DNA from: Mytilus trossulus
Lineage: Eukaryota
Reading direction: 5' to 3'
Length of the DNA stretch: 64,000 nt
NCBI RefSeq assembly: GCF_036588685.1
Contig: NC_086377.1
Location: forward strand, 64,356,001-64,420,000
Numbering within the stretch: position 1 is the stretch's first letter; each line of letters begins with the position of its first letter. Shown here in pieces: positions 44,601 to 63,901 of this stretch. Made by a program: the position numbers and the translations under genes. The notes beneath the pieces are model-generated. The model searched no databases. It was not told where the DNA came from and worked only from the letters and a program-made list of their open reading frames with translations.

Positions 44601-47600
44601 TTTGGCTTAAGTATGTTACAAATATTAAATCTTCATTTTGAATTTTCTTTTAATAACTCAAACAGAGATTATTTTTTTTCATCAAAAGATAAAACTGACA
44701 AAACCAACAGCTAAATTCCCATTTGATATAATCGCAAAGTGTTACTTACAAAATAATTTACGTGCCAATTTTAATAAAGAAGATCAATGGAAAATCCTTC
44801 AATAGTTAAATATGAGAAGAATTTAGAATAATTGTTTAAAATGAGCAAATATTAGTTAACCGATGAAAAAGAGCATACATCGATTGAGAAATATAGATTC
44901 TTACACTGCAACAAGTGTATTACGATATTTCTCCACTCGAGACAGTTAAATTTTATTATTTTAAGCGCGAGGCTTGCCGAGCCCTTTAAATAATAAAATT
45001 TTATCTGACGAGAGTGGAGAAAAATCGTAGTACACGAGTTATAGTGTCGGAATCTGTTTCTCTAATGGTTTTTATCGTTCTTTTTCAAAGATTTTCAGAA
45101 AATTGTGCTCTTTATAAGCGACATCATCAGGCAATGTCGCCTTTTTTCATGACGTCACAATAGGAAAATTGAGAAGAAAACAAAACATTTTGACGTCATC
45201 ATCAAATTTCGACTTATCATTTGCCGAAAACAGATTTTTCACTAGTGAGGAGAAATATTTTTCTCACACCGGTCAGAAAATGTGAAAATAGCACAAAAAT
45301 TAGAGAAGTTATTATTCAATATTGTTCAAGGCCAAAAAAAAAGAACAAATCTTATCATCAAACGAAATCTGAAAAAGCTGTAACCTCTCCACTGCGGTAA
45401 ATTGAGTACTTTTAAGACATTTCGTTGCAGTCTATAAAGATAGGTTCAGTCTAAATTCAGACTGTTCAGTTGTTGTTATTAACCTAATAATTTACCTAAT
45501 TGTTTTTATGTAACAAATAAAAATATATTAAAAATGCTATCAAGCAGTACTGAATAGTACCGAATTTACAGTATGAATGTATCAGACAAATCATTGAATC
45601 TTTTCAAAAAGCATACCATGCAGACTTTTTACATTTTGATTAGATCAAAAGGACCGTTAAAGATTAAAATTCTTTGACAAGTGAGAAATATTTAAATAAT
45701 AAAAATACCAAACTCCACGAAAAATTCTATACTGAAAGTTCCAAAGCAAATAGCGAAATCAAAAGCCCTTACACATCAAACGAATGGATAACGACTGCCA
45801 TATTCCTGATTTGGTACATGCTTTTTCTTACGCAGAAGAATGGTGGATTGAACCTGATTTTATAGCTAGCTAAAACTACCACTTGAAACTCGAATAATAG
45901 GATTTATTTATTTTTTTTTCAGAAAAAAAAACATTCGAAAATTATTATCTTTACGTATGAGAAAAATCAAATGGATCCATACTCGAAGTTTCACGAGAGA
46001 ACATTACATTAAATTATTATTTTATACACAGCTACGTCATCTTGCATTTTACTGTAGGTATTTGAAAAACATTTTGCATACTGAGGACGTTCCAAAGGAA
46101 GATGCCGTAAAAGCTGTTCTACATATTTCTACAACAGAAATCGGTCGTCTGCAAGCGTTAGAATTTATCAAGGGAAATTGGGATGTTATTTTTAATAGGT
46201 ATGTACACTTAAGAAAGTAATCAGTGTTTTAGTAGCATGACTTTTAAAAGATACCATTTTTTTTTACACAGGCACAAGACCATTGTTTCTTCTACTTGGT
46301 AAACTTTTCAGGAGTTATTTTCTTTCTTGTATTACAAATCTCATAACTTGTTTTTAAGTAGAATCGAAGTGCATTTCAAAATATTCAACATTGAATAACT
46401 TGTATTCAGTAACTTTATACCGGTTAGTTATGTATTTTTTCAGTATAATATGAAAAATATTTGCTACAGTATGAATGTTTTAATTAGACAATATGTAGAC
46501 ATATGTAGACACCTGTCGGTGCTTACTGAGCAAATACTTTCCTGATGAAATCTTCAGTTTCCCTTGCAATTTGGAAATACTTAGTTTTACACACTTAACT
46601 TATAGAGTCTTAACAAAACGTCTTCCAAGTGCTCCACAAAACCTCTTTCTAAATTATTAACATCCATTTTATCAGCAATCAAAGACGGACTTCAAAGTTA
46701 TTGTGAAACTGCCTATTCTAGAGGTGGCGTGAATCAGATGTGGATACTTAAAAATTCCGAAGATCTTTTAGAGTACATACAATCTAACACTCTTTCATCT
46801 TGTAACAGTATTAAAACATTTGACTTCTCTACTCTTTACACAACTATTCCACATTCCAAACTTAAAGACAAATTAAAAGAGTTGGTATTACTTTGCTTCA
46901 TAAAAAAAGAATGGCCAACGTAGATACAAGTATCTTGTCTTAGGGAGGGATAAATCCTACTTTGTAAAGAATCACTCTGATTCAAACAAAAAATTCTCTG
47001 AAACCGATATTATCAAGATGCTTGATTTCTTGATTGACAACATATTTGTTACGTTCGGAGGACGTGTTTTTCAACAGACTGTCGGCATCCCAATGGGAAA
47101 AAACTGTGCCCCTCTACTTGCTGACTTGTTTCTTTATCATTATGAGGCTGACTTCATGCAGGAACTTCTTAGGAAGAAAGATAAGAAGTTAGCAATATCC
47201 TTTAACTCTACTTTCCGCTATATAGATGACGTTCTTTCACTAAACAATTCAAAATTTGGTGACTATGTGGAACGCATCTATCCCATTGAATTGGAGATAA
47301 AGGATACTACAGATACAGTTAAGTCAGCTTCATATCTTGACTTACATCTAGAAATTGACAATGAGGGTCGGTTGAAGACAAAACTTTACGACAAAAGAGA
47401 TGATTTCAGCTTTCCAATTGTGAACTTTCTAAGTAGCAACATTCCAGCAGCACCTGCATACGGGGTATATATCTCTCAATTGATACGATATTCCCGTGCT
47501 TGCATTTCCTATCATGATTTTCTTGATAGAGGGTTACTGCTCACAAGGAAGCTATTAAATCAAGAGTTCCAAATGGTGAAGTTGAAATCATCCCTACGTA

Positions 47601-49869
47601 AATTTTACGGACGCCATCACGAGTTGGTTGACCGTTATGGAATAACCATTTCACAAATGATATCGGATATGTTCCTTACGTCGTAACTACAATCCCCTTC
47701 CCTTTCATGAATTTGAACTACCGATTTAGACTATTTACCCGATTTGTAATCACATAAGCAACACGACGGGTGCCGCATGTGGAGCAGGATCTGCTTACCC
47801 TTCCGGAGCACCTGAGATCACCCCTAGTTTTTGGTGGGGTTCGTGTTGTTTATTCTTTAGTTTTCTATGTTGTGTCATGTGTACTATTGTTTTTCTGTTT
47901 GTCTTTTTCATTTTTAGCCATGGCGTTGTCAGTTTGTTTTAGATTTATGAGTTTGACTGTCCCTTTGGTATCTTTCGTCCCTCTTTTATAATCTTGCTTT
48001 ATCTTATCCATTCAATTAATACCTTCAAATATACCAAATAATCCGAGCATACACCTTATGATTATGATTTCATTGTAACCATTTGATAGGATAACATTAA
48101 TTGGAAAGAATAGGCTGACTTTACGACACTGGTTAACTTCTACTTCATTTGGTAACCAGTGGATAACTGTCGAATTAGCAGTTAAATAACATATCTAAAT
48201 CTTTGTTTTATAAAAGTATCCTTGCTTCTATTTCAGACTGGTTAAAAGCGCAAAAGAGCAAGAAAAATTATTGTCCGGTATTTACGATATGACGAGGACA
48301 GCCGAGGAAATAAAGAAGGTAACCTTGAATATCATTTATTTTACAATACTTTAAGTTTGTATATAGTTTAGTCATAAACACAATTGTGATGGTTTAATTT
48401 TTTTTCTAATTATTCTTAATCTTTTAATAAATAACTAAAAAGAATGGTGGTACAATTGCGAATAAGACAACTCTTCACAAGAAACCAAGTGACACAGATA
48501 TTATCAACAATACGTAACCAAAATAGTTATATTAAGTTACACATAAGACCTTCAAAAGAACCAAACACTTAACCAATACTTCAACATCATATAAAGCCTT
48601 TTGATAGGGAATACATTCTCAATGGAGAATCAACGAATACAAATGTTTAACGTCTGTTGTTTGAATTGGCATGCGTTCCGACTGCGACCCCTCGCACTCA
48701 CGGCAACACGCTACTATGTCTTGACGCGATATACATGACAAAGTTCGGTTTATTATTTATACATAAACACATATCGACTTTTTTAAAAGTAATGTTCAAT
48801 TAATCATAGATACCACCTTATTTATTGTATATTGTCTGGACATATCGATTTAATGAAAATTCATAAAAAGAATAACAAAAAAGGGTACTGTTTGAATAGA
48901 TTGTTTTTTAGTGATTTTATAGTGTTGTACGGGTTATACTGTTGCATAACTTTAAAATTTGTTCAATGCTATGTAATAACCTATTTTGCAAAATGGTAAG
49001 AACTCTATCATGGATACCAATAACCTCCTTTCAAGTTTAATCTACTAGTGTGTTTACCAACATAATTGTTTTAATGTGTGCCTGGCCTCATTAAAAAAGT
49101 AAAATCACAAAAAAAAAACTGAACTTCATGGAAAATTCAAAAAAGGAAATTCCCTTTTTAATACAAATAGCAAAATCGAAAGCTCAAACACATCAAACAA
49201 ATAGACAACAACTGTCATATTACTGACGTGGTACAGGCATTTTCTTATGTAGAAAATGGTGGATGAACCTGATTTTATAACCAGCAAAACCTCTCACCCG
49301 AATAACAGCCGCTTCAAATTATTATTGAAAATCGTCAGAAAACAATTATTGATTACATTCTATATAATTATGAGGGTCTTGATTCGGGGATGGGGTCCTT
49401 CATTTATGTTTTGTTTTTTACTAATTTAAAAAATACTAAACTTTTTATTATTAAATCATATTCTTTATATGTGAGTTCCTAATGACTCTACTCACTTTTC
49501 TCTCTTTCTTTCAAGTTTTGCCCATTTTTTTAATTCTATAATTCCTATCTTTACTCTGAATTAAAATTCGTAAACGATAAGAATATCAAATTTAGTGTTT
49601 TTGTTGTTCTGTTGAGATGTTTGTTTTCTGTTTTGACATTTTAGGCCTACAATAATTTTGTTCCATACCCATTGGATATATTTTATTCCGGTTACAGGGA
49701 TTGTTTTTTATTCACCTTTATTTTTCAGTTTGCGTACTTGATTAAAGATTCCCCGACGATGATGAAACTAAATCATAAGCCAGGGGTAGAACAATCGAAC
49801 AGCAGATACAAATGGAGCAAAAGGAATTATCATAATATCAAAAAGTGGTTGCTGGACCAAAACATTTGA
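11603..49869 (+). CDS. M1-family zinc metallo-aminopeptidase, aminopeptidase N-like, type II membrane anchor, ~955 aa, 21 coding exons
   Basis: Exons, all GT-AG and phase-consistent: 11603-11753 (signal anchor [23 protein letters not shown]), 15319-15754, 18284-18439 ([18 protein letters not shown]), 19797-19914 ([11 protein letters not shown]), 21147-21267, 22135-22289 (GAMENWG...HELAHM), 25901-26014 (WFGNLVT...WLNEGFA, completing HEXXH-X18-E), 26609-26740 (FDTITYSK, catalytic Tyr), 27904-27969, 29704-29769, 30446-30633, 32486-32586, 33258-33397, 34288-34343, 35345-35492, 40016-40092, 41342-41452, 44256-44423, 46058-46198, 48237-48318, 49729-49869 (stop TGA). Total 2868 nt. Orthology within the M1 family was not determined. 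Confidence 0.95.
11810..12040 (-). mobile_element. Degenerate tRNA-derived SINE (V-SINE-like)
   Basis: Minus strand starts ggtggcgagtggtctgagtagt (A-box-like), has gagttcgta (B-box-like), and later ...acactccggttcctccacc. Related fragments at ~19560-19635 and ~21730-21850. Confidence 0.5.
13482..13941. mobile_element. MITE-like element with internal tandem duplication
   Basis: Terminal ttatcttacc / ggtaagataa. Two internal copies of aagggacgta...actactaaccgtg(c/t)atgaaataagc(t/c)ccgcctc. Confidence 0.55.
15767..15949. mobile_element. Short fold-back MITE immediately after APN exon 2
   Basis: aattcgccgtttcagaatctaatgcatc... is inverted relative to ...gatgctttagattctgaagaggccaatt. Confidence 0.6.
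16130..16445 (-). mobile_element. tRNA-derived SINE with Deu/Nin-like central domain
   Basis: Minus strand has tggtgaagtggttagtgcgttggact (A box), ggttcgattccc (B box), then gtccgtcggaagggggcgacaaa...gcacgttaaagat...gaaaaagagcag, resembling the Deu/Nin domain. Confidence 0.65.
16697..16969. mobile_element. MITE flanked by TTAA (Kolobok/piggyBac-type target)
   Basis: ttaa|ggtggtacc ... ggtaccacc|ttaa. Confidence 0.75.
17041..17955 (-). mobile_element. ~915-bp non-autonomous TIR DNA element, copy 1
   Basis: Termini gggcgtatgacatttgcgccgat / atcggcgcaaatgcaaaacgccg, three subterminal catttgcgccgat repeats per end, 8-bp TSD attttaat on both sides. Confidence 0.9.
18478..19419 (+). mobile_element. 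~940-bp non-autonomous TIR DNA element, copy 2 (inverted relative to copy 1)
   Basis: Same termini and subterminal repeats, 8-bp TSD caataatc on both sides, and collinear with the reverse complement of 17041-17955. Confidence 0.9.
22251..24073 (+). repeat. 55-bp minisatellite, 33 copies plus a partial one; unit is the last 39 nt of APN exon 6 plus 16 nt of intron 6
   Basis: Unit atagttacaagtatagtatctcatgaactggcacatatg|gtaaggaaataaacgt. Copy 1 is the real coding sequence ([13 protein letters not shown]). Confidence 0.97.
24655..24818. repeat. 54-bp tandem repeat, 3 copies
   Basis: tctgacacaaaaccaagcattcctcatacgttttataacagaaaagaaatgata starts at 24655, 24709 and 24763. Confidence 0.85.
27228..27435. 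mobile_element. Tc1/mariner-type MITE
   Basis: ta|ctgtgaattcatt...ttggataccaattttcgtggat ... atccacgaaaattgatacccacgaaaataaatgaatccacag|ta. Confidence 0.75.
28376..28610 (-). mobile_element. Short Helentron/HINE-like element (same family as 34480-34780; partial copy at ~54711-54860)
   Basis: Reverse complement of 34480-34780: tttttatgccc ... ggtagtttttgatgaagttgaagtccaatcaacttgaaacttagt ... acattcttgtt. Confidence 0.65.
29298..29640 (+). mobile_element. Degenerate tRNA-derived SINE (Meta-like core) with (CCAT)n tail
   Basis: Degenerate tRNA-like head, core ccaaggactttataattgtcctttgctgcttcttc...catgcagcattaa, and tail ccatccatccatccatcc. Confidence 0.55.
30926..31643. mobile_element. Fold-back MITE with ~310-bp inverted arms
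   Basis: ttaa|ggtagcacaatacaaagatttt ... aaaatctttgttttgtgctacc|ttat. The arms align over ~310 bp, e.g. ataaatgaggtaccaaaa / ttttggtacctcatttat. Confidence 0.85.
34480..34780 (+). mobile_element. Short Helentron/HINE-like element
   Basis: aacaagaatgtgtcc head, (GACG/GGAC)n microsatellite, 3' hairpin atgcccctctac...gtaggtgggga. Confidence 0.7.
36128..38579 (+). mobile_element. Head-to-tail dimer of a ~1.15-kb Helentron-like non-autonomous element with a triplicated 3' hairpin
   Basis: Copy 1 spans ~36128-37270 and copy 2 ~37278-38426; both start ccaattgttcagagaacaattgaaggtcttt. Three exact 51-bp units follow (38427, 38478, 38529), each containing the hairpin taggtctttccac-agaaaa-gtggaaagaccta. 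Confidence 0.8.
38954..38998 (+). ncRNA. Type I hammerhead ribozyme, apparently intact, in a ~185-bp repeat (38856-39041)
   Basis: Stem I gcgtca/tgacgt, core CTGATGA, stem II gtct/agac with loop tttgc, GAAA, minimal stem III with palindromic cgcgcg, and a GTC cleavage triplet (cut after 38992). Confidence 0.8.
41894..41935 (+). ncRNA. Type I hammerhead ribozyme-like motif, second repeat family
   Basis: Stem I gcgttc/ggacgc, CTGATGA, weak stem II (aggtaaatcca), GAAA, palindromic aagcgctt stem III, and a TTC triplet (cut after 41929). Confidence 0.6.
41981..42385. repeat. 49-bp minisatellite, 8 copies plus a partial one, with diverged units continuing to ~42730 and at ~44098-44255
   Basis: Unit gccatacacatgactgttggtgttgtatacttgttccatattctattgt at 49-bp spacing (41981, 42030, 42079, ...). 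Confidence 0.9.
42737..44097. mobile_element. Non-autonomous TIR element inserted in the diverged minisatellite, with a duplicated right TIR
   Basis: Left end ggagtaggttcggtaaggacc. The right end occurs twice: ggtcttactcaaccttctcc and ggtcttactggaccttctcc. Host repeat sequence resumes after the element. Confidence 0.65.
43107..43908. mobile_element. Fold-back element with long inverted arms and TA TSD, nested in the element above
   Basis: ta|attgcgaacccaattgaaccttt ... aaaggttcaattgggttcgccat|ta. The arms match for >200 bp. Confidence 0.85.
44895..45307. repeat. Interspersed repeat with a ~160-bp hairpin at its left end
   Basis: agattcttacactgcaacaagtgtattacgatatttctccactc...aaattttattatttt is inverted against tttaaataataaaatttt...gagtggagaaaaatcgtagtacacgagttatagtgtcggaatct. 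Confidence 0.6.
46620..47987 (+). mobile_element. 5'-truncated, frameshifted Penelope-like retroelement (RT C-terminal half plus 3' UTR)
   Basis: RT motifs [31 protein letters not shown] and FRYIDDVL, followed by [16 protein letters not shown]...[11 protein letters not shown]. Frameshift in the A-run near 46905. The 3' UTR (47690-47987) recurs at ~59490-59810 and as fragments at ~1540-1745, ~10620-10720 and ~21390-21600 (minus). Assignment to Penelope-like elements is by motif resemblance. Confidence 0.85.
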
Positions 49870-51179: not shown

Positions 51180-52495
51180 CTACATAACGCGACACAATTT
51201 CCCTTTTTTGGTCAATTTTTTTTCCATCGCCTTCGACTTTTTTCTCAATTTCTCTAAGTACATACGATGATCATAGAATACTTTATCCATTTTTGAATGC
51301 AATTCATTTTCCTCTCTCTGTAGTTCTTGTTGGAGGGTCATATTTTGACGATTTCCTTGGTCTCTCATTTCTTTCGAAATTTCTTGGAGTCTTTCGTCTA
51401 TTGCTTTCATTTCCTCAACTGCTGTGTTCATTTGATCATAAAAATCAGTGTTTTTCAATGCTAACATTCGCTGATTGTGTTTTGATTTTGTTTCTTTTAC
51501 CAACTCTTGTAAATCTCCCTTCACTGTATCATACGCATCTTCTGCCTCTCTTTTCTCTCTTTCCTTCTCTTTTAGCAGGTTATTGGCTTTAAAAATTTCG
51601 TTATACAGATCTTCAATTTCTTCTGAATTAGGTCCAACTGTGTTTCCAGGAGTACTGCTTTCATCATCGCCTTTTGTTGACATTATGGAATACTTAATTC
51701 TTTTCTTCTGTTCTTCAAGCTTGATTTTTCGCTCTTCTTGTTGATGAAATTCTTCCTGTTTTTGTTTTTTTATTTCTCTATTTATGTCGACTTGTTTTCC
51801 GTACATGTTTTCAATTTGCTCAATTTCCTTTAGTTTTTCCATTTCTATTTGTATCCGTGATTGTCGAGCATTGTCTTTAGCATCTTTAAACAAATTATTT
51901 GAAAAGCACATGTTCTGATTTTGTTTGACGATAGTGTCGATTAAATCCAATAGATTTTTGATCATTTCCGCTCTATTTTCCGCTGCAGCTGTGTTGTCCA
52001 TAGCGAAATAACGTCCATGACATTTTTCTATGTACGTTGTTAATGGTGTACCTGATTCTTTTATATAATCTTCAATAGTATCATTTTGATTCTTCAATTC
52101 GTCCATTCTGGTAAATAAGATAATCGAAAAAGCTTCCATTTCCTGTCCAAATATGGCAAATAACTGGTCTAGGGATTCAATTTCTTCTGGAGTAAATCTT
52201 CCAATCTGCAACACAAGTAAAAATACATGTGGACCTGGAAATGACATATGAACACAACGAATGATACTTTCTTCAATTTCTATTGGAGATAGTTTGGTAT
52301 CAAACAATCCAGGAGTATCAACTACTATAATTTGGCGATCATCAATTTTGATATCACCGCGTTGACACTCTTTGGTAACAGACAGGCCTGCCATCTTCGA
52401 TTTGAAGTTTTTATGTCCAAGGATAGCATTCCCAGTGGCACTCTTACCCGATCCAGTTTTTCCAACCATTACGATTCTAAGTTGTTTGAAGGTGT
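51180..52495 (-). CDS. GIMAP/AIG1-family GTPase terminal exon with coiled coil and polybasic CaaX C-terminus
   Basis: G1 GKTGSGKS, G2 SVTKEC, G3 DTPG, conserved box GPHVFLLVLQIGRFTPEE, G4 TRMD, then a long E/K/Q-rich coiled coil ending ...KKLTKKGKLCRVM-stop. Acceptor ttctacttgtag| lies just before 52495. Confidence 0.95.
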
Positions 52496-55400
52496 CTACA
52501 AGTAGAAACTAGATGTTAATAACAAGGCACATTAGTCATGTTTACTTTTATAATACACATTGTTGCCGCATTTCCAGGCACCTGGCCCATATGCCAAGGG
52601 AACTTTTCTAAAAACTTGGCGTCCTGCGTCAATCGTCTGTTGTCCGGTTACATGGTTGTTTTTATGAGATGAAAAATATAATGTGAAGGAGGCGTCGACA
52701 TTATTTGGGTCAAAAAATCTGCAAGCTTAAGGAGGTTAGCTACTAGGTGTCAAAATAACAAGCTTTTTGATAGTGTATTAATAAAGGAGCCTAAAAGGCA
52801 AAAAGTAAAATATAGGTCAATGAGTTTGTTTTCTAGAAAGCAGCCATTGCAATTTTGGCGGAAAAATGTCCTCTCTTGCTTTTTCATAGCTTTATCATTG
52901 ACAAATGTAAGTTCTTAAAAACTATTGAAAAATAATTTTAATGTTAAGAATTATAATGGATAAAACCATAGAAAAAACGAAAATCTGACAAAAATCCCAG
53001 AACATGACAATAGAACATTCTTAAACATGTCATAAGCACAGACGGTAACCAGCAATAGACAAGTGTTTATATGTTATCTTTTTTGGGCCTATATTTATCA
53101 TCATGACCAAAGAAGTAGTGAATACATTTAATAGAGAATATATAACATTGTGATCAACATCTACTAATAATTCCCTAAAAATTTAAAAAAACAAAATTGT
53201 CATATCATGAGGTTTCAGATGCTGCAGTGTTCAATATATATTTATAACTTCATTAATAACACCTTAACTTTTGAAGTTCAAGTTTTAGAAAATAGTTTTA
53301 GTTCGTGTTATCATTAGTTTATATTGATATGAACCGATATGACATTAACATATTTAGCTTATTTAGATACGGTTTTTTTATTGAGTAAACTTGAGATTTA
53401 TAAAACCGGCTTCTAAATTATTTAGACATAGTACAATAAATGGAAGACAATTGAATTATAATCTGCAAATAAGTATTCTATCATGTATTGCTTGTTCGTT
53501 GTTTCAACTTCGAATGTGGCAATTTCATCGAATAAGAAAAAAGAATATCTGCATACAGCATAATTACTATGAAACATTTAATATATTCATTATTGATTTC
53601 ACAATGGTTGTTGCAGTATGAGGCTTATTACACTGACTACTAGTACTAGTACCATATACAAGAGTTTTTAAAAATTATTTTGTGAACGATGTTTACATGT
53701 CTTACATAATAATGATAGCAATATAAGTTTAAAATAACCTCAACTGTATGAACCCTATGTCAGGTCAACATTACATTGATCACATCTATAAACACAGTCA
53801 TGCCTTTTATATCACTCTCGTTTTATCATGTTTATCGCGCTGTAGTAATGTATATATATGTTGAACCCTAATCCAATAGTCACTAAAAAATGCTGTTTTC
53901 ACTGGTCACGACGATCAATGTTCTACACAGATTTGATTCATCTTCATTATTCCTAAATTTGACCATACAAAGTAAACCTCAACATAACTACTTATAACAA
54001 AAAGTATTGTCCCACCTATATCTTCGTAAATAGGTTCTTCGTAGGTAGTTTTCTGAGACAAATAGTTTGGAACATTCTCATAGTCTGAAATAAAATAATA
54101 ATTTAAAGTATTGTGCCTGAATTACTGCAGTACATGTATGACACATGATGACACAGTATAATGTTAAACAAGCAGATATTATGTTATGTCTAATGTATAT
54201 GTTAACCTCTTAACCATTCACGGTATCAACATTACAAACAGAAGTAAATTATAAGAAGCGATTGTAAATATTGGAATAAAGAACGTTTGTAACATAGTAA
54301 GGTACATGTAATTAAGAGTTAAAATAATATAATAAGTATTGCGTATGTTTAGTTAGATTTGTATTACGGCTATGTTCAGGGATGTACTTTAAAATATACT
54401 ATAATGTTACCGTTACTTATCCCTGGTCTATAATGTGGGTAATCATAATCGTCATAATCGTCATCTGAGTTGTCCCTTTGCTGTATTTCATACGTCCTTG
54501 TCAGCTCTGAAAAACAATATAATCATTTCGTAGATTTATGAAAGATTAAAGAGATAAAAGTATAAAAACATACTCAAAATAACAAGAGTCATCAACGAGT
54601 CTGTTTCACTCGCATAGGTGTATCTGCATTTTAACAATGAACACCCTCAATTATGGACCAAATCCATTTTTGTATGATCTTGTTCTTCTGACCGATATTG
54701 CTATTCGCATTTTTATGCCCCACATACGATACTGCTATAAGGTAAGGGAGGCATAAGGTTATGTTTGGTCTGTGCGTCCGTCTGTTCATCCGTGGGTTTG
54801 TCCGTCTGTCCTGCTTCAGGTTGAGGTTTTGGTCATGGTAGTTTTTGATGAATTTGAAATCCCATCAGTCAATGGCTTTTTTTTAGAATATTATTGCTAC
54901 AACTGTAAAATATAATAAGCTTCTATCTAACTATCTATCTAGTATCACGATTATAGTTTTTCAGATATAATGCAAAAACTCTTAAATGGAAAAAAAATGT
55001 GTTTTTACGTGTAATTACTTCAATAGCCGAAAAAAAAAAGCTGTTTAAACGAGTTTAGTTATATTTTCCAGTATTAAAGACAAGAGGCAAAATTTTGAAA
55101 CTTGTCATTTTAGTAAAATAAATACTATAAGTATTTTTTTGAAATTAAAAAACTTAAGTAAATCTTAAGAGTCTAAACATTATTTTCCCTACCAGATTTC
55201 TCTATAAGTTGATAAAAAAAAAATTGCATTTAACCCTTTTGTTAATTTTTAGCCATGTTTACACCTCGTTATTATTGCGATGTGTGTAAGCTTTGATTGA
55301 TTGTGGTGTTTTCACTACTTTTAATGTACATAGCTATAATATGAAAGGAATAGGAGAAAACCACAGCCCAACAAATATAACCTTGTTCAATAAAGATCGA

Positions 55401-58400
55401 ATTCGAACTCGTTTTGCAAAACCGCTTGCGTATATTTAGTGTTAAGTTGTTGTATACACATCTTATCGTAAACTTTTCATCGGTGCTACATATACCTCAA
55501 TAGACTTCTGGTGGATTTTGTATAATTTAATTAGCATTCTGTGCAACCTAGAATAACAAATCTATCTGGAAAATAAAAAAACCCTCTTTTTTACTGCAGG
55601 TGTCATGTTCCATCTACTAATGTTAAAATCTTATCGAGTACTGATATTTAATGTTGTTAAAGTATCATGAATACGACATACGATCTCTCTTTACCTGCAT
55701 TTGTTTGTTTCTATGTGGATAAAGTTTAAAGTTGAAACAAAATAATAACGTCATGCTCAAATGTTTGATGATATTTCACTTAATGAATTACTTTGTTTTT
55801 GTATTTTATATATAAGCTGTAATCATACCTTCTTCATAAATATGCTCGTGTAGAGATGTGTTCTCTGATTGTTTATCTTCGGAACTATCCGTTTCTTCAA
55901 AAGAATCATAATAATTATAACTTACGGCAAATGAAAGCCAATGGAAGCTATAACCATACTTGATAAAAACTACATTCATGACAAAACGCGTTACAAGCAT
56001 TTGACGACCACTCTCAACCCTCCTATCTGACTTAAAAAATCAAACGCATTTACTCGACGACAGGATAAAAAATGTAATGTCTAAAATGTTATTAACAAAC
56101 GAGGTCTTTTGATTGAAAGATTAATTTTATATCAGCACATTGGCTTGAAACATGAAGGATTGAACTTTTAATAAATTTCAAGAGGCAAGGTTTGTCGATA
56201 ATTTCAAAGACACCGTGATGCATATGATTTGGTTGCCCTTTATTGAATGTTTGATCTGGAAATGAATGTTTCACAATACACGATTTCTACACATTTTGAA
56301 AAATATTACCTTAGACGTATTAGGCAAAACTTTAAGAAATATTTTGTCTTCAATGCTCTTTAACTTCGTACTTCAATTGGCCTTTTCGACATTTTTTAAT
56401 TCGAGCGTTACTGATGAGTCATTATAGAAAAAACGTGCGTCTGAATAAGAATAAAATTCAATCCTGGTATCTTTGATGAGTTCATTTGTAATTACCAAAT
56501 GTGACTTATCTTATAAGTTAAATGTAATATGGCATTACAATCTCATGAGATATGTCCCTATTGCTACAGAAGCTTCTTTCTGTTTACTGTTATGAGTTCT
56601 GAAGTCCATAAGGTATATTATGTCGGTCTGTTACTGCAACTGAGATTACTTGCGGGTGTTTTTGTTTGCACTTTTCCGCTTCATGCATTGTTTCTTTCAC
56701 AAAATTGTTTGGTAGTAATCTGTGCTGACTTCTATGTTATTGTTTTTCTCTTTTCCATCAAATCATGGTATGAAAACAAACAACCAACGCTAGTTAAGAT
56801 GATAATCTATTGCAAATGACAGACTCGGGGATTGTATTCACTACCTCAGTGTTGACTGACAAGTTATCAATTGGAGTGCATTGCAGCATCAATGAGTTTT
56901 GATTGAGATGTTGACGTATTACTAAGATGAGCGTCTTGTTTAACAACAAAAAAAAAAGGAACTGAATGCGTTAGTGTTTTAGCTTTGTATATGCACACCG
57001 TATTTTTACACATCATTGGACATCGGTGATACATACATGTTTCAATCGTATTAAAGTATTAATTAAGGGCATACAATACAGTTTTGAACTCATAATAAAA
57101 TTGTGATGAGAATTTGCATATGGGCTATAAATCAAATATGTAATAAATATATATCTTTATGTGCCACTACTTTTAGTAAGATGAAGTCACTATTTCAGAC
57201 ATATTCTCAAAATTCGGATCATATGGAATGATAAAAATCTGTCGAAAAATTAAACTTTCCCGATATATCACAGTTTGACGTCGCAAAAAGTCTTTAGCTG
57301 GTTTGTAAACAGTGTATATAGATGATTTATAATGATTTTTTTTGAAATTACAGTTTTTTAGTGTGAACTATTTTTTTAGGAGTATATAGTTTACTTTGTT
57401 CGTTCCTTCGTGTTTAAGATTTAAAACACACAAGTAGTGATGTTGACGTTCTTCATTCCGAGTGATGTGATTTTTCTTATTCGTTCTTTTTCAGTGTCGT
57501 TTACACAATCAATATTTATACCTTTTTCAAATTCGTCATATATATCCTCGTCATCGTCGTCTGATGTATTTCCTGACTTATTTGCATGTGAACTACTCAG
57601 TTCTGATAAAAAAAAATACCATTTATATATAACGTTAGTAAGATGATACAAGATTTTACCACTTTACATAAACGCATGGAAGAAAAACCAACGACACGAT
57701 TTTAATTGCCTAAGGTATATTATAAACGCCTGTAGCTTTGCCTCGCTACAAGCTTCCTTCACACTTTTTAGAATTGTTGAAAAAGATAAGTTACAGATAC
57801 GAATTTCATCTTTCACATGTAGCAAAATGTATAATGAAATCAGTCTATTGATGTCTTTGCAATAATTTATATGTTTTGGTTGTCCATTATTGAATATCTG
57901 TTCCGTAGATGAACAAGGATATATTCCAGAGTCAATGTGTCCATGATCTTGTCATTACTGAAAACGACTTGCATATGAATATTGAATTACAATTATAATG
58001 AGTTCATGTAAAGGAAAGAACTATTACACTCATCTTACCTTTCAAAGAATATGTTTTACCCCCAACCCCTACTTTGGTTTCATTCTATCAAACTACGTAT
58101 ATAATTTTATGTTTTTGTAAGCGTACACAAGCAATCTTATTTTAAGAATTGTTTCAATCAATTAAGAACCACGAAATGATTGAAGTCGAATGCATAAAAC
58201 CACATCGGGGTTCAAACTTAAAACAGTAGTGTTGACTGGCTAGTTATCACTATGGATACTGTTTAGATCATTCATACACAGAGACCATTTGAGATGATTC
58301 ATATGTTGACATATTATAAAAAAAAAACGAAAATAGAATATGCAAATTGAAGAACTGAAACCAATTGATTAACTCAAAATAGATCATACTATTTCTAACA

Positions 58401-61400
58401 TACCTTTAGCTTTCGTATATTTTCTGTAGTTTCGTTGCGGAACTGGTGGTGTTAGATCACCTAAAACAAGATTATGAGGTTGAACGCATGAGAAAAACAA
58501 TACATATAAATTGATAAACACAATATGATATTGACATGCATTGAATGTGAGGAAAATGAGTGTTTAAAAGTGTGCATTTAACATACACTTGTCTTGTCTC
58601 TGCATATTTTACCAGAAGTTAAATGAAATGCGCAACATAAATATTTACCATTTTGTCTATTGAATAATTTTGGGTGGAAAGTATTGAATTTCTGTAGTAT
58701 ATTTAAAAGAGAGTGTTCTTCCTCGGTTGATTAAATTTCGAAAATAAAAAAATATACCTATTTTGAATATGTTTTGTGACAATTTTCATGCTTGTATTTT
58801 AAATTGCAAGAAACAAAATCTAAGGTTCGTGCAGTCATATTCTTTTAAATGGCTGAAAAATTTACGAATTTCAGATTTCCAAGAAAAACGCATATTTGAA
58901 TTCTTCTGAGTTAGCATACACATTTTTAAAAACGCTTTTGATATACACGGATGAATTGGTTTTTTTTCTCTAAAGGCGAACGGAACGGAACGTTTAAATA
59001 TGACTCATCAGTGGCTACAAACAAACCACGAAAAAACGTTATTATCAAAAAGATGAAGTACATTTACTATTACCATTTTTAAATAGAACAAATTTCCGTA
59101 TTTTGCATTGCGTTTTGTGAGAACTAGACATTACCGATAAAACCATTTGTTAATCTAGCGTTATTTCAGAAACATGTGCCAATGCACAATGATATATAAT
59201 CATAATACTGTCAGACATGTGTGATAGATGAAGAAGTCAGTTATTTATGTTTGAGTCGTAATATCCGAAGTTCTTGAACAATTCAAATAATTCAGAATAC
59301 GTTTTTTATAATAAAAAAAAAACACCAATAGAAGTGGAACTCAATTCTTCATAATAATGAACTAACTATGTATTGTTGATCGACCCAGTTTTGATATAAT
59401 ATAACAAGATTCTTGTTCGTAAAAAAATGTGAAGATTGTTTAAAATATAGATTAAAGATCAACCATCAAATCATCATTGTTACAATCACTGACAACTCGT
59501 TACGTTATATACAGTCCCCTTCCCTTTCATGAATTTGACCTCCCGAATAGGACTATTTACCGGATTTATTATCACATAAACAACACGACGGGCGCCACAT
59601 GTGAAGCAGGATCTACTTACCCTTCAGGAGCACCTGATATCGCTCCTAGGTTTTGGTGGAGTTCGTGTTGCATATTCTTTAGTTTTCTAAGTTGCGTCAT
59701 GTGTACTATTGTTTTTCTGTCTGTCTTTTTCATTTTTAGCCATGGCGTTGTCAGTTTATCTTCGATTTATGAGTTTTACTGTCTCTCTGGTATCTTTCGT
59801 CCCATTTTAAATGTCAGGTAGTTAAAGTGGTATTTGTTCAATATGAAATTCGTTCAAAATAACAATATATTCATATCTCATACGTTTGTCATAGATGTGA
59901 TCATCTATGAAGACTAAAGAATCCGAAAATAATTGAAGACGTTAGTGGAGGATCGTCATAGTCTTAATAGTTTTTAATATTATGTTATTTTCTTAAATAA
60001 AATCTGTCCTTGAACGTGTAAATATATAAAACTGTGTTCGGATGATTGATTATGAAAACAGGAGAATGCTATTAATAGCTGAATATCATTGTATATCTTT
60101 AGATACTTGCAATTTCTTTTCAACGGGAAAATATAATATTAAATTTGATCAATTTTATTTGCTATGAATTACGGCAACAAAAGTGGTTAAAATATAATAA
60201 CTCGATTCTGACCAAACTAATCAAGGTAAGACATATTAACTGAAGTAAAGACAATGAATTTAAATAGTTGTAGAATCGGATGCTTTTACAATATATGTTT
60301 CTTTTATTACAAGTCAATTTGTCACAACCTGGAGAATAATATAAATAACCTGAGTAAAACATAATTTGTAAAATCAATCATGTTTCTCGTGTCTCGTTTT
60401 TTTATAGAGATTATACCGTTGATTTTCCTGTTTGAATGGTTTTACATTTAGTAATTTGTGGGACCCTTTATAGCTTGTTGTTCAATGTGGTCCTATGATC
60501 CGTGTTGAAGAATGTACATTGACCTATCATGGTTTACTTTTATAAATTATGACTTGGATGGAGAGTTGTCTAATTAGCACCCATATCACATGTTTCTATA
60601 TCTATCTAAAGATAAGAATAAGACAATGTTATTCAATTATAAAAAATTATAAATCAACGTTTAAGAAGAGTTTAGATATGACATGTAGGATAAGATAGAT
60701 CATATGCATATACAGAAAATCTCTTTTATAGCTAACATTTATATATATATATATATATATATTTTAATAAGAGTTCATAAATTTCAAATTACCTTCGTTT
60801 GTTTTCTGTTCAATGTTAACGTCTTTACCATCAAATCTGGTTTGGGATGTTTCAATATGTGCTTGAGCTGCATTTTTATAAAACAAAATAAAGTAGCATG
60901 CGACATCATGGTAAAGCTTCAGAATGTATTAATTAAATCATTTTTATTAGCAGACTTGAGACTGTTGTGTTCAAATGGTCCATTCTTTAAATGCACGAAG
61001 ATCAAACTTAATTAATGTTCATATTTAGAAAAAAAAGAAATGTACTTTTAAAAAACTTACTCGCAGTATGACCACAAAGTGTTCATCTTACGTTGAATAT
61101 GATAGAATAGCTGATATAATGAGCAATGTGGGAGTACATATTATGTTGGATTGACAGGAATTTATATATTTCTTCAAGGCTTCAAACTCTTGCGTTATAA
61201 CGTTTATTCATATTTTTTGTTGGTTTACTTGGTAGAATCAAGTAACTCATGATTAAATACTTAAAAATAAACCAACAAAAACCAATATATTGTACCTTAT
61301 CTAAAAGTATAATTCAAAGACATGTTGTTGAAAAAAGTAAAATCACAAAAATATTGAACTCCGAGGAAAATTCAAAACGAAAGTCCCAAATAAAATGGCA

Positions 61401-63901
61401 AAAGGAAATAATAAAAAACACCAAACGAGTGGACAACAACTGTCATATTTCTGCGTGGTACTAGCATTTTCAAAAGTAGAAAATGGTGAAATGAACCTGG
61501 TTATATAGCGCTAAACCTCTCATTTGTACTAAAAAATACACTAGTGTTAGAGATTGTTTTAATAAAATTTTCTGAAATGTTTACAATTCGTTCAAGTTTT
61601 TAAATTGAAAATTGACGTGGATTCATAATCCTGTTTTTTAGGTCTCTTAGTTTACTCTAGTTTATTTCAAATTTATTGTCTGTCTGTTTGTTTTAATCTT
61701 CTAAACTCGAGATATGTAGTACTTGAAAAACTAGTGATCTTCTAACCTATTACATGTATTATGAGGCAAATAACTAGTGATTTGAGCAATTATGTTTAAA
61801 TATGTTAATGTTAATGTTTGTCAAATTTTTTCATTTGTTTATACCTGCAATACTTTCCTGATCTGTTTGCTCAACGTAGTAGTCTGGGATCCATCCTTCT
61901 GTATTACCATGTAAAACCCATATCCAATGCCCATCACTCGTTACATACTCATGTTCCACAACATCACCTTTCCTCACATTCAGGTTATCCGTGTCGTATT
62001 CGGATTTGCTTTTGAAGGATTGTTTAACCTTGTAAACTTTTCCTTTAATAAACATGTCCTAATTATAGTTTGCATTTTCATTTAATACTTTTAAGAATGT
62101 TCAATTGATTTCCATTTTGTTATTTATGTAAGTCTTCAACTATCAAAGCAAATTAAAAAAAAAATGGACCAGCAATATATTCAAAATGAGTGCATTTGAT
62201 AAATTGTACAACAATATTAGGTTTAATTAAGAAGAGTGCATGTCTACACGCACGGTTGAACTTTTTTAAAAGTTTAATAACAAAGATACCGAACGCCCAG
62301 TGAAATTCGGAGTCCCTTATAAAATCGCAAATTCAAAGGCTTACTCACATCTTACTTTGGGGCCTTCTAGAGCTGACTATGCGGTACGCGCTTTGCTAAT
62401 TTTTGAAGGCCGTAAAGTTAATAGCCATAGTTGTTAATTTCTGTGTCAATTGGAATAAAAAAAATGTGTTTGTCTCGAGTTTAGAAGATTAAAACAAATG
62501 ACATACAAAGAGTATGTCTTCATCACATGAACATCTTTTGTAGAGTTGTTTCATTGTCAATTATACCAAGCCTTCTTTTTATATCAAGAATATAAACGAA
62601 AATTAAAAAAACATACAAGACAAACACAGGTCTGATTTGGGACAGGCGCAAACATGCAGCGAGATATCAAACATCCCCTTTACCTTTAGCCAACGTAAAA
62701 TAAAGAAACATAAAGCAATACGCACATTAAAACTCAGCTTAAGAGAAGTCCGACAACGATGTCATAAAAGGGTAACAAAAGAAACTAACAATAATACATA
62801 AATGAACAAAGGACTACTGGCAGTTATTGGCATGCTAGCTCTACACCTTAATTAAACTGGTTGAAATATTATGTCTTCATCACATGAACATCTAGTATAA
62901 TCCCTCCCGTTATTGGTTTAGTATCAAATCATCATAAACTATATGAGAAGAACACAACTGGTATCAGGCCAAAAACTGGTTTTAAGAAATGTGTTTATTT
63001 CCGATGCCAAGATCCTACGAGTGAATCAATATTATTAAAATACGAAATATGAAAAATTACATGATAACTGCATAAATTTTAGATATCAACGTCCATAAAA
63101 TGAACTGATGAGTAATAAGTCATTTGAATCAACTACAAATAATATTGATGAAAAAGACAATATTTTGTTTGTGTGTCAGCAGGATTTGTATGTAACAATA
63201 TATCAAAAAGAACATATAATAAATTTTAAAACTTCAATACTAATATCAGTTGAGTCGTAAATCAATTTAGTTGTACAATACTTAAAATGTATACGTACCA
63301 TTCAATTACACATGAATTTGGGTAATGTACAAAGACAATGTGTTATTAATAAATGTACGACAACCTAAATGTACGACAACCGCGCAATGTGCAAAAAAAA
63401 TTGATTAGTATGTGCAGTTAAATAAAAAGCCGACAAATTGCTTTCATACCGTACATCTTTAATTTCTTTGGGGAAAAAAAAAAGTTAAAATCAAAACAGT
63501 TTTAATTTCATGGAACGTCTCGTAAATAGGTTGTAAACATCAGTAAACATCATTAAATCTCAGTACACGAAGTCTGAACTGAGTATAGTCGCAATTCATA
63601 AGTAAGAGTTTGTATACAATAAACTTAGAACAATTTTCGACAATAAATATGTCAATGATATTTTGTCTTTTGAAATTGTGATATTATTAACAATATTGTA
63701 TTACATTACTTTTCAGCGGAACAAAATCTGTTGGTTGAACAATTTTATCCTGGATCCATCCCTCAGTATCGCCATGTTCTACCCAGTGCCAACCTTCTCG
63801 GCTGTCTATAAGTTTGACAACATCTCCTTTTTTAACATTCAAATTATCTGTGTCGTAATCAGATTTACTTATAAAATCACACAAAACATTTAACAATGTT
63901 C
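51180..63901 (-). CDS. SH3-SH3-(Tyr/Pro-motif linker)-AIG1/GIMAP GTPase-coiled coil-CaaX protein; 5' end lies outside the window; >=~730 aa within the window
   Basis: Proposed exons: 63901-63705 (SH3 #1), 62058-61845 (SH3 #2), 60867-60793, 59913-59884, 58460-58404, 57602-57522, 55894-55829, 54506-54411, 54084-54016, 52495-51180 (AIG1 domain and tail). All are GT-AG and open in a common spliced frame; the linker exons are all phase 1-1. Joining them into one transcript is inferred from phase compatibility and from the GTPase exon having an acceptor upstream of its first Met. Confidence 0.78.
56310..56487 (+). repeat. Hammerhead-bearing repeat copy with a decayed ribozyme core
   Basis: Same family as 38856-39041. 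CTGATGA is present, but GAAA is mutated to AAAA and stems I and II are broken. Other decayed copies lie at ~50190-50297 and ~16450-16550 (minus). Confidence 0.7.
59490..59810 (+). mobile_element. 3' end fragment of the same retroelement family as 46620-47987
   Basis: Collinear with 47680-47987 (cccttccctttcatgaattt...acacgacggg...catttttagccatggcgttgtcagttt...ggtatctttcgtcc). Confidence 0.85.
61845..62058 (-). CDS. SH3 domain exon #2
   Basis: YKVKQSF...DNLNVRKGDVV...GHWIWV...EGWIPDYYVEQ matches the SH3 pattern (ALYDY-like strand, ELSFxKGD, WW, GxxPxxY). Flanked by tag| and |gtataa. Confidence 0.85.
63705..63901 (-). CDS. SH3 domain exon #1 (paralogous to SH3 #2)
   Basis: LNVLCDF...DNLNVKKGDVV...GWHWV...EGWIQDKIVQ. 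Acceptor atcttgcag| is phase 1. The donor is either after 63705 (phase 0, fits the next exon) or after 63710. Confidence 0.82.

Follow-up and report, generated by a model that had tools for sequence, protein, structure and literature searches.

Six symmetric mini-exons of a Mytilus SH3-GIMAP gene encode a tyrosine-rich linker that may serve as a docking scaffold

The stretch analyzed here, termed the window, comprises 64,000 nucleotides (nt) of Mytilus trossulus contig NC_086377.1 (positions 64,356,001 to 64,420,000 of the forward strand, RefSeq assembly GCF_036588685.1) and carries on its minus strand a gene in which six mini-exons encode a tyrosine-rich linker between SH3 domains and an immune-type GTPase of the GIMAP/AIG1 family. 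A previous reading made from the letters alone (the sequence-only reading) had placed a cassette of seven such exons at 54016-60867, and all seven motif strings named by it were found on the minus strand where it had put them, in a region of about 31% G+C. The gene corresponds to the RefSeq protein XP_063438057.1 (P0148, 830 amino acids, aa), the peptides of which match the window exon by exon. Window exons were checked singly, while the database protein P0148 was used for all whole-protein analyses; the exons of 81 and 66 nt, which lay outside the tblastn matches at the 85% identity filter, were confirmed via exact peptide match. RefSeq lists P0148 as 'putative leucine-rich repeat-containing protein DDB_G0290503 isoform X1', which is misleading because Pfam finds SH3 and AIG1 only and no leucine-rich repeat in this protein. 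The name probably stems from the coiled coil of low complexity.

In protein order, P0148 features a Cys-rich exon, three SH3 domains, a linker of 154 aa, an AIG1/GIMAP GTPase domain, a long coiled coil and a polybasic end with a CaaX box. All exons lie on the minus strand, and coordinates above 64000 belong to the adjacent locus L005. There, exon 1 (L005 5260-5353, 94 nt) encodes the Cys-rich first 31 residues and exon 2 (186 nt) the first SH3 domain; exon 3 (63 nt) is a Ser-rich spacer. Upstream of the mini-exons, two SH3-like open frames are found at 63.9 kb and 62.0 kb. Exon 4 (63710..63901, 192 nt, phase 1-1) encodes the second SH3 domain, which the sequence-only reading had counted as its first, and equals aa 116-178 of P0148 by exact peptide match (Pfam SH3_2, E=4e-8). 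Exon 5 (61845..62042, 198 nt, phase 1-1) encodes the third SH3 domain, previously counted as the second (aa 180-244; SH3_2, E=1.2e-5), with the SH3 domains of Grb2 and p47phox as closest solved chains. The mini-exons follow, each phase 1-1 and treated here as one unit. Exon 6 (60793..60867, 75 nt, aa 246-269, unit H) is a hinge without named motif, whereas exon 7 (58404..58460, 57 nt, aa 271-288, unit P) carries PPVPQR, a PxxPx[RK] pattern, followed by RNY. Exon 8 (57522..57602, 81 nt, aa 290-315, unit T1) encodes an acidic run with terminal EDIYDEF and exon 9 (55829..55894, 66 nt, aa 317-337, unit T2) ends in HIYEE. DYDDYDYP is provided by exon 10 (54411..54506, 96 nt, aa 339-369, unit D), and DYENV as well as EPIYEDI by exon 11 (54016..54084, 69 nt, aa 371-392, unit E). 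The coding part of exon 12 (51180..52495, 1316 nt with the stop codon, aa 394-830) encompasses the GTPase, the coiled coil, the polybasic stretch and the terminal CRVM.

The six mini-exons have exact AG/GT borders, their peptides are identical to P0148, and they encode the whole linker (residues 245-398). Hence, the expectation of seven symmetric phase-1 mini-exons was borne out for those of 75, 57, 81, 66, 96 and 69 nt and not for the one of 30 nt, which is discussed below, and five real mini-exons instead of six carry a named motif. All 11 coding introns are in phase 1, and all 10 internal coding exons are symmetric (1-1) and multiples of three. Symmetry is thus a property of the whole gene and no special mark of the cassette. 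Nevertheless, as the six exons are multiples of three and phase 1-1, any of them could be skipped in frame, and the earlier arithmetic on frame-safe skipping of any subset holds.

The assignment to the GIMAP/AIG1 family relies on several features. Downstream of the mini-exons, an open frame of 429 aa (51180-52469) covers a full AIG1/GIMAP GTPase domain, and a protein search with this frame returned Mytilus matches, some of which combine SH3 and AIG1 and contain linker units homologous to the mini-exons. In P0148, Pfam AIG1 (PF04548) scores 209.5 bits at a cut-off of 27 (E=4.8e-62; profile positions 1-208 of 212), and exon 12 scanned as a single exon gives E=2e-60. The P-loop GKTGSGKS and the DTPG motif are nearly invariant in a family alignment of 24 rows. 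A coiled coil after the G domain, which is part of the AIG definition in the portion of the Biomphalaria AIG paper considered here (PMC7053062), is given by AlphaFold2 helices at residues 593-665, 683-740, 743-773 and 778-821 (predicted local distance difference test, pLDDT, of up to 87), on which the coiled-coil call rests. The C-terminal CRVM is a CaaX-type end, and C827, V829 and M830 are likewise nearly invariant in the 24-row alignment. All three SH3 domains were recognized by Pfam SH3_2 in three stretches (58.9 bits); in addition, SH3_1 matches residues 48-83 with 35.1 bits, and single SH3 exons score 25.4 and 33.3 bits. The Cys-rich first exon did not match any Pfam family even at E<=10. 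Its 31 residues comprise a Trp followed by two C-x2-C pairs, which resembles the zinc-finger pattern of the RanBP2 type.

Evidence for the splicing of the mini-exons was obtained from public sequencing runs. Five of them contained 6-13% of the sampled words of 51180-60867, which is about the expectation for exons alone. Contigs from four runs of three studies were placed on 53950-59949, a span beyond which the 75-nt exon lies. They revealed the joints 54506>55829, 55894>57522 and 57602>58404 in all four runs and 54084>54411 in three of them, each reading CT..AC on the plus strand and thus GT..AG on the minus strand. Per run, every joint is seen in one contig with 0-3 mismatches per listed exon piece, and the contigs cover exons and intronic repeats only, with no depth elsewhere in the introns. 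Moreover, run X4 has a loose end behind 58462 whose 10 letters are identical to the last 10 of the 75-nt exon, which is therefore joined directly to the 57-nt exon. Accordingly, the mini-exons are spliced in as had been presumed, five of them by four joints and the sixth by this loose end.

Two further observations were made on these contigs. At window position 57568, contigs of three of the four runs read C instead of A; on the coding strand, an Asn codon of exon 8 thereby differs in its third base and encodes Lys, as at the aligned position of the Mytilus galloprovincialis orthologue; the difference is probably allelic. In addition, intronic repeats at 59350-59949 and 54750-54949 are covered by contigs in all four runs to a very high total depth, in the hundreds to thousands, with many loose ends. 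These repeats probably represent an abundant transcribed transposon family, and an open frame similar to them is located at 47770-47991.

The 30-nt candidate exon HIYDK (59884..59913, minus strand), previously regarded as an acidic Tyr site, lies in intron 6 and was rejected as a chance open AG..GT stretch. It took part in no joint in the four runs, is absent from P0148 and from the second RefSeq isoform (P0125) and is without counterpart in the linkers of eight other gene models. Furthermore, its last base is C, whereas each of the 11 real donor exons has G or A at this position. The 6.9-kb region contains 148 open AG..GT candidates of phase 1-1 and 21-99 nt, and a candidate of this type is thus expected by chance. 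A modest splice-site filter is passed by 25 of the 148, among them five true exons and 19 with a Tyr codon; the true 75-nt exon fails it. Even so, the choice of the six true exons by eye proved right.

The composition of the linker differs clearly from that of the remaining protein. Its 154 residues include 13 Tyr, 40 Asp and Glu, and 16 Lys and Arg, Tyr making up 8.7% of the linker vs. 2.5% of the rest. For comparison, nine gene models of the same architecture from five Mytilus species were considered, with the unit borders in the other species set by homology to the M. trossulus exon borders and by isoform gaps. The linker Tyr excess is three- to fourfold in eight of these models and about twofold in the ninth. 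An AlphaFold2 model based on the 24-row alignment (mean pLDDT 52) gives pLDDT values of 23-28 over residues 243-398, with a short helix (244-252) as sole secondary structure, compared to 60-78 for the SH3 domains and 50-74 for the G domain. Within the linker, PPVPQR of exon 7 is a conserved class II SH3 ligand pattern in a region with pLDDT below 30, and two YxxP sites occur. The immunoreceptor tyrosine-based activation motif (ITAM) requires a spacing of 6-12 residues between two Yxx[L/I] sites. Exon 11 misses this consensus, since its YENV and YEDI have 14 residues between them and the first of these sites ends in Val.

Comparing exon numbers among paralogues, as the sequence-only reading had proposed, revealed that both number and order of the units differ, with at least five orders in the nine models. 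The order H-P-T-T-D-E is shared by the M. trossulus gene and its M. galloprovincialis orthologue LOC143051797, whereas M. galloprovincialis LOC143076040 and its Mytilus edulis counterpart feature H-P-T-P-T-T-D-E. In Mytilus californianus, H-T-P-T-D-E (LOC127711645) and P-P-P-T-D-T-D-E (LOC127711647) are found, and a 746-aa model of Mytilus coruscus shows H-P-P-T-P-D-E. Unit E is always last and directly precedes the GTPase. The T1 and T2 exons are duplicates at the DNA level (z=6.3 vs. shuffles). Taken as a comparison of sequences, this is consistent with modules which would have arisen within Mytilus as symmetric exons were duplicated, lost and reordered, a process by which they would still be reshuffled.

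The conservation of motifs in homologues, which had been left as a point on which the earlier proposal could fail, was confirmed for three motif classes. PxxPx[RK] is kept in all nine models in up to three copies and is followed by N-[Y/F] in every gene, E[PS]IYEDI is likewise kept in all nine, and YxNV in eight. Moreover, [DE]x[ILVFT]Y[DEKL] occurs in at least two copies in 8/9 models. At the level of sequence, the one-motif-per-exon modularity is therefore real and conserved for these three classes. The nearly invariant linker positions of the 24-row alignment are limited to N373, V374, E385, E386, I388 and Y389. In the orthologue LOC143051797, the linker is 72% identical vs. 93% for the GTPase and coiled-coil part, and 12 of the 13 linker Tyr are kept vs. 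71% of the other linker residues; in five paralogue comparisons, the values are 7-8 of 13 vs. 31-40%. The reading of EDIYDEF as a near-optimal Src site is not backed by conservation: the four residues after its Tyr are missing even in the orthologue.

From these data, we consider it probable (about 0.6) that the six symmetric motif-module exons encode a tyrosine-rich linker acting as a docking scaffold in a GIMAP GTPase. Ile at position -1 and acidic flanks favor Src-family kinases, phosphorylated YxN binds SH2 domains of the Grb2 type, and phosphorylated YEEI-like sites bind those of the Src type. Src-type kinases would accordingly phosphorylate those tyrosines of the linker that have an Ile at -1 and acidic neighbors, and these would then bind SH2 proteins, YxN those of Grb2 type and YEDI those of Src type. 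The PxxPxR unit would bind an SH3 domain, either that of a partner or one of the protein itself. With the protein presumably membrane-tethered and self-associating, the linker might in this way tie tyrosine-kinase signaling to a membrane-tethered, self-associating GIMAP GTPase. The M. trossulus genome comprises at least 44 exon stretches matching SH2, and thus readers of phosphotyrosine exist in it. Separately, two strong SH2 matches were noticed within 1.3 kb (G000:C4:57229827-57231158, plus strand); they point to a gene with tandem SH2 domains, of the Syk, SHP or p85 type, whose product would be a candidate for reading phosphotyrosines in pairs.

Several points weigh against a docking scaffold. 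Phosphorylation, SH2 docking and the SH3 clamp discussed below are events which we infer for P0148 from its motifs. These motifs are short, and the biased composition of the segment around them readily gives rise to such patterns. The excess in Tyr conservation is modest, and it derives from a small sample to which no significance test was applied. In the 746-aa M. coruscus model, Phe replaces the Tyr of YxNV, and YDYP, which had been assigned as a Crk/Nck-type YDxP site, is kept in only two of the nine models, so that this assignment is not upheld. The linker is predicted to be disordered; still, with the mean pLDDT of 52 and 24 aligned rows the AlphaFold2 model is poor, and 'disordered' is thus a weak statement. 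Besides, the runs were only guessed to be RNA, each joint relies on one contig per run, and contigs hide minor isoforms; the lack of introns in the contigs argues that the runs are indeed RNA.

The linker may instead be a passive spacer, i.e., a flexible acidic tether whose motifs are by-products of a composition rich in Asp, Glu and Tyr and of exon duplication. This would explain why linker identity among paralogues is only 33-42% with many insertions and deletions, why the number of units varies freely, and why YDYP and the residues behind the Tyr of EDIYDEF are not kept; the AlphaFold2 model, which shows neither structure nor docking in this segment, fits as well. Nevertheless, disordered spacers are usually poor in Tyr, whereas linker Tyr is enriched two- to fourfold in all nine models. 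Moreover, a mere tether would not readily account for the NV and EE.IY of the last unit, nearly invariant over 24 rows, or for PxxPx[RK] with subsequent N-[Y/F] in every gene, up to three times. We therefore regard a purely passive role as unlikely.

Alternatively, the units could be cassette exons regulated, e.g., by infection, with their combinations choosing the docking partners. The symmetry of all units, by which every subset remains in frame, suits such a splicing code, and single-unit skipping is indeed annotated for a paralogue in two sister species. For M. galloprovincialis LOC143076040, isoform X2 lacks 20 aa (unit H) and X3 lacks 23 aa (unit T); for the M. edulis counterpart, X2 lacks 16 aa (unit P) and X3 again 23 aa (unit T). 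In these isoforms, the residue at each junction is altered in the way that a codon split in phase 1 predicts. Upstream of the linker, isoforms of M. californianus LOC127711645 contain the symmetric spacer exon either once or twice. However, its nine distinct isoform proteins vary only in the N-terminal exons and none in the linker. The M. trossulus gene has two RefSeq isoforms, which differ only by the 186-nt exon of the first SH3 domain (missing in X2, P0125), and the M. galloprovincialis orthologue LOC143051797 has a single RefSeq protein without linker variation, although an older model lacks 19 aa inside unit D. In M. trossulus, inclusion alone was found in the four runs and both isoforms, and no skipping joint occurred in the runs, the contigs of which drop rare forms. 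Furthermore, the annotated skips concern one unit at a time and no combinations, and RefSeq isoforms are computed models. Combinatorial splicing, as proposed from the letters, is thus not supported for the M. trossulus gene, and a regulated code in this family appears doubtful.

A third possibility is an autoinhibitory clamp, in which PxxPxR holds an SH3 domain of the same protein closed until phosphorylation or a competing ligand releases it, as in p47phox, where tandem SH3 domains mediate autoinhibition. A PxxPx[RK] unit, kept in all nine models, is located 26 residues past the last SH3 domain, and among solved chains, SH3 chains of p47phox (NCF1) are the best match to two of the three domains. 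In the alignment to Grb2, the third SH3 domain retains, at ligand-contacting positions, the Trp as well as Pro and Tyr of G-x-I-P-x-x-Y. The second SH3 domain has Gln and Ile in place of the conserved Pro and Tyr. AlphaFold modeling, which had been recommended as a check of the clamp, showed no rise in confidence at PPVPQR (pLDDT 23-25 over residues 261-300) and no sign of docking, which is of limited meaning given a poor model without contacts output. Up to three PxxP units in some paralogues fit multivalent partner binding equally well. Overall, a clamp seems rather improbable.

The fusion may also be read as a natural 'Rosetta stone' that puts GIMAP GTPases into tyrosine-kinase signaling, with clustered, farnesyl-anchored molecules forming a receptor-less, hemITAM-like platform for Src/Syk-type kinases and Grb2-type adaptors, although we would assign this only a slim chance. 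On this speculative view, self-association via the GTP-bound G domain and the coiled coil might gather EEPIYEDI/YxNV and I-Y-[D/E] units. It is equally conjectural that the number of P and T units sets the valency and is altered by exon duplication between genes and, in some paralogues, by skipping. If true, phosphotyrosine docking would report the nucleotide state of the GTPase.

Mammalian GIMAP6 binds GABARAPL2 and GIMAP5 is situated on lysosomes. Against this background, YENV and YEDI could serve, unphosphorylated, as Yxx-hydrophobic signals for adaptor complexes, or E-E-x-I-Y-E-D-I as an Atg8/LC3-interacting region (LIR), which would place the GTPase on endolysosomal or autophagic membranes; two Yxx[ILV] sites beside the GTPase in 8/9 models and a conserved CaaX end with polybasic stretch, suggestive of a membrane-facing location, are in line with this, but PxxP units and repeated I-Y-[D/E] units are left unexplained, an Ile directly before the Tyr is unusual in the stricter form of the LIR pattern, and we regard such sorting or autophagy signals as very unlikely.

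With the docking scaffold as the preferred reading, the protein can be compared to known systems. The GIMAP/IAN/AIG1 family is the one to which its C-terminal 437 residues belong, being a full AIG1 domain followed by a long coiled coil. In contrast to other GIMAP proteins, P0148 adds an N-terminal Cys-rich exon, the three SH3 domains and the linker with Tyr and PxxP motifs, and its membrane tail is of the CaaX type and no transmembrane helix. At least 53 GIMAP-type exons were found in the genome, in line with the expansion of the AIG family described, in the part of the work considered, for Biomphalaria (PMC7053062). Among the best 120 GIMAP matches, only two contain SH3, both from Mytilus. 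The GIMAP review entitled 'an incomplete puzzle' (PMC8201404) contains no occurrence of SH3, tyrosine, prenyl or farnesyl, and the main text of the Biomphalaria AIG paper, apart from its supplementary domain-architecture tables, does not mention SH3 (PMC7053062). Likewise, GIMAP, SH3 and Mytilus were not found together in a literature search, and the architecture appears in no title of the literature on GIMAP in Mytilus. One mollusc paper mentions AIG1 and an SH3 domain, each a single time.

Searches for the fusion outside Mytilus gave a similar picture. When the first 296 residues of P0002 were used in a word-based search, eight matches resulted, all from Mytilus. With P0149 as query, an exhaustive phmmer search yielded 225 matches (E<=0.001), and the ten scanned with Pfam among the best 150 are generic multi-SH3 proteins, none of which had AIG1. 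In the M. trossulus genome, no close paralogues were found, the gene being the single close family member. The third-SH3 exon matched only the gene's own two SH3 exons and an inverted pair with 43% identity at C5:7.32 Mb, the next GIMAP exon is 37-39% identical, and the distant GIMAP genes L007 and L008 do not feature such a linker in their large exon. The inverted SH3-like pair (L003 1453-1680, minus strand, and L004; G000:C5:7.316 and 7.320 Mb) is located between the GIMAP-coiled-coil genes L007 and L008 at C5:7.29 and 7.42 Mb, and together they may constitute a second, distant SH3-GIMAP group.

The nearest functional analogue, judged by analogy of layout, is the Cas family (p130Cas/BCAR1, NEDD9), although P0148 does not qualify as a member. 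As described in the sections considered, Cas proteins feature an SH3 domain, then an unstructured substrate domain with many Tyr, phosphorylation of which by Src-family kinases recruits SH2 adaptors, and also a YDYV-type site (PMC8266394). Comparably, the SH3 module of P0148 is followed by a predictedly disordered Tyr-rich linker with PxxP and a set of YDYP and Yxx[IV] sites. Nevertheless, no sequence homology was found (Cas SH3 only E=0.067), Pfam finds no Cas domain in P0148, which lacks the C-terminal helical domain of Cas proteins as well as their many repeated YxxP sites; its YxxP sites are just two and not conserved, YDYP being kept in 2/9 models, and its effector end is a GTPase.

For p47phox (NCF1), the likeness comprises two SH3 domains back to back with a proline motif downstream. 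Among solved chains, its SH3 chains are the top matches for two SH3 domains of P0148, and for the remaining one they are closely preceded by three Grb2 chains (E=1.2e-7, 2.6e-4 and 5.5e-6). The similarity is still weak (E 1e-7 to 3e-4), a PX domain is missing, and no docking is seen in the model. The previously noted likeness of EPIYEDI to motifs of the bacterial effectors CagA and Tarp stands as a short E-P-I-Y-x pattern which would suit Src-type kinases, and falls with regard to homology, since only four letters are shared. Moreover, the Mytilus gene is a host gene with introns, and its single EPIYE reads EPIYEDI instead of EPIYA, with one copy per protein and no repeat segments.

At the exon level, Schad, Kalmar and Tompa (2013) reported, in the sections considered, a statistical rule for human genes, by which symmetric exons encode disordered modules, often through internal tandem duplication, are enriched in SH3-binding motifs and are alternatively spliced (PMC3632108). 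As far as given there, the pattern is fully matched by the Mytilus mini-exons, which differ in being one concrete case, specific to the genus Mytilus, in which every internal coding exon is phase 1-1, folded domains included. Thus, the exon-level principle was already known, whereas a scaffold of SH3 domains and tyrosine/PxxP motifs on a GIMAP GTPase seems to be restricted to Mytilus and not to have been described before. The biochemical role of GIMAP/AIG1 proteins is open, and what is known of their large expansions in molluscs comes mostly from expression studies. The fusion of three SH3 domains and a conserved PxxP/acidic-Tyr linker to a Mytilus-only GIMAP offers a concrete, testable link to SH2/SH3 adaptor signaling. 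In addition, it is a clean example of a putatively disordered scaffold that has been assembled and reassembled from symmetric mini-exons in a single genus, and the nine models with at least five unit orders represent a useful case for the evolution of short-motif valency.

Several relatives and further parts of the window showed additional features. In M. coruscus, some 500 additional aa, with a precomputed match to PF18738, separate the first SH3 domain from the spacer in P0156 and P0126; this is either one more shuffled module or the product of gene-model fusion. The M. edulis protein P0122 (526 aa) has the Cys-rich exon, SH3 domains (the second duplicated) and the Tyr linker, but its helical tail is another one and lacks AIG1. 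Either this model is mis-joined, or the SH3-linker module is attached here to another C-terminus. Two tandem arrays, with near-identical repeated open frames of 47 aa and a thrice-repeated peptide, are located in the window at 41903-42449 and 38304-38657. Finally, on the plus strand at 46729-47686, open frames of 64 and 222 aa are found, the longer of which holds Y-I-D-D and, by eye, looks like a reverse-transcriptase fragment of a retroelement.

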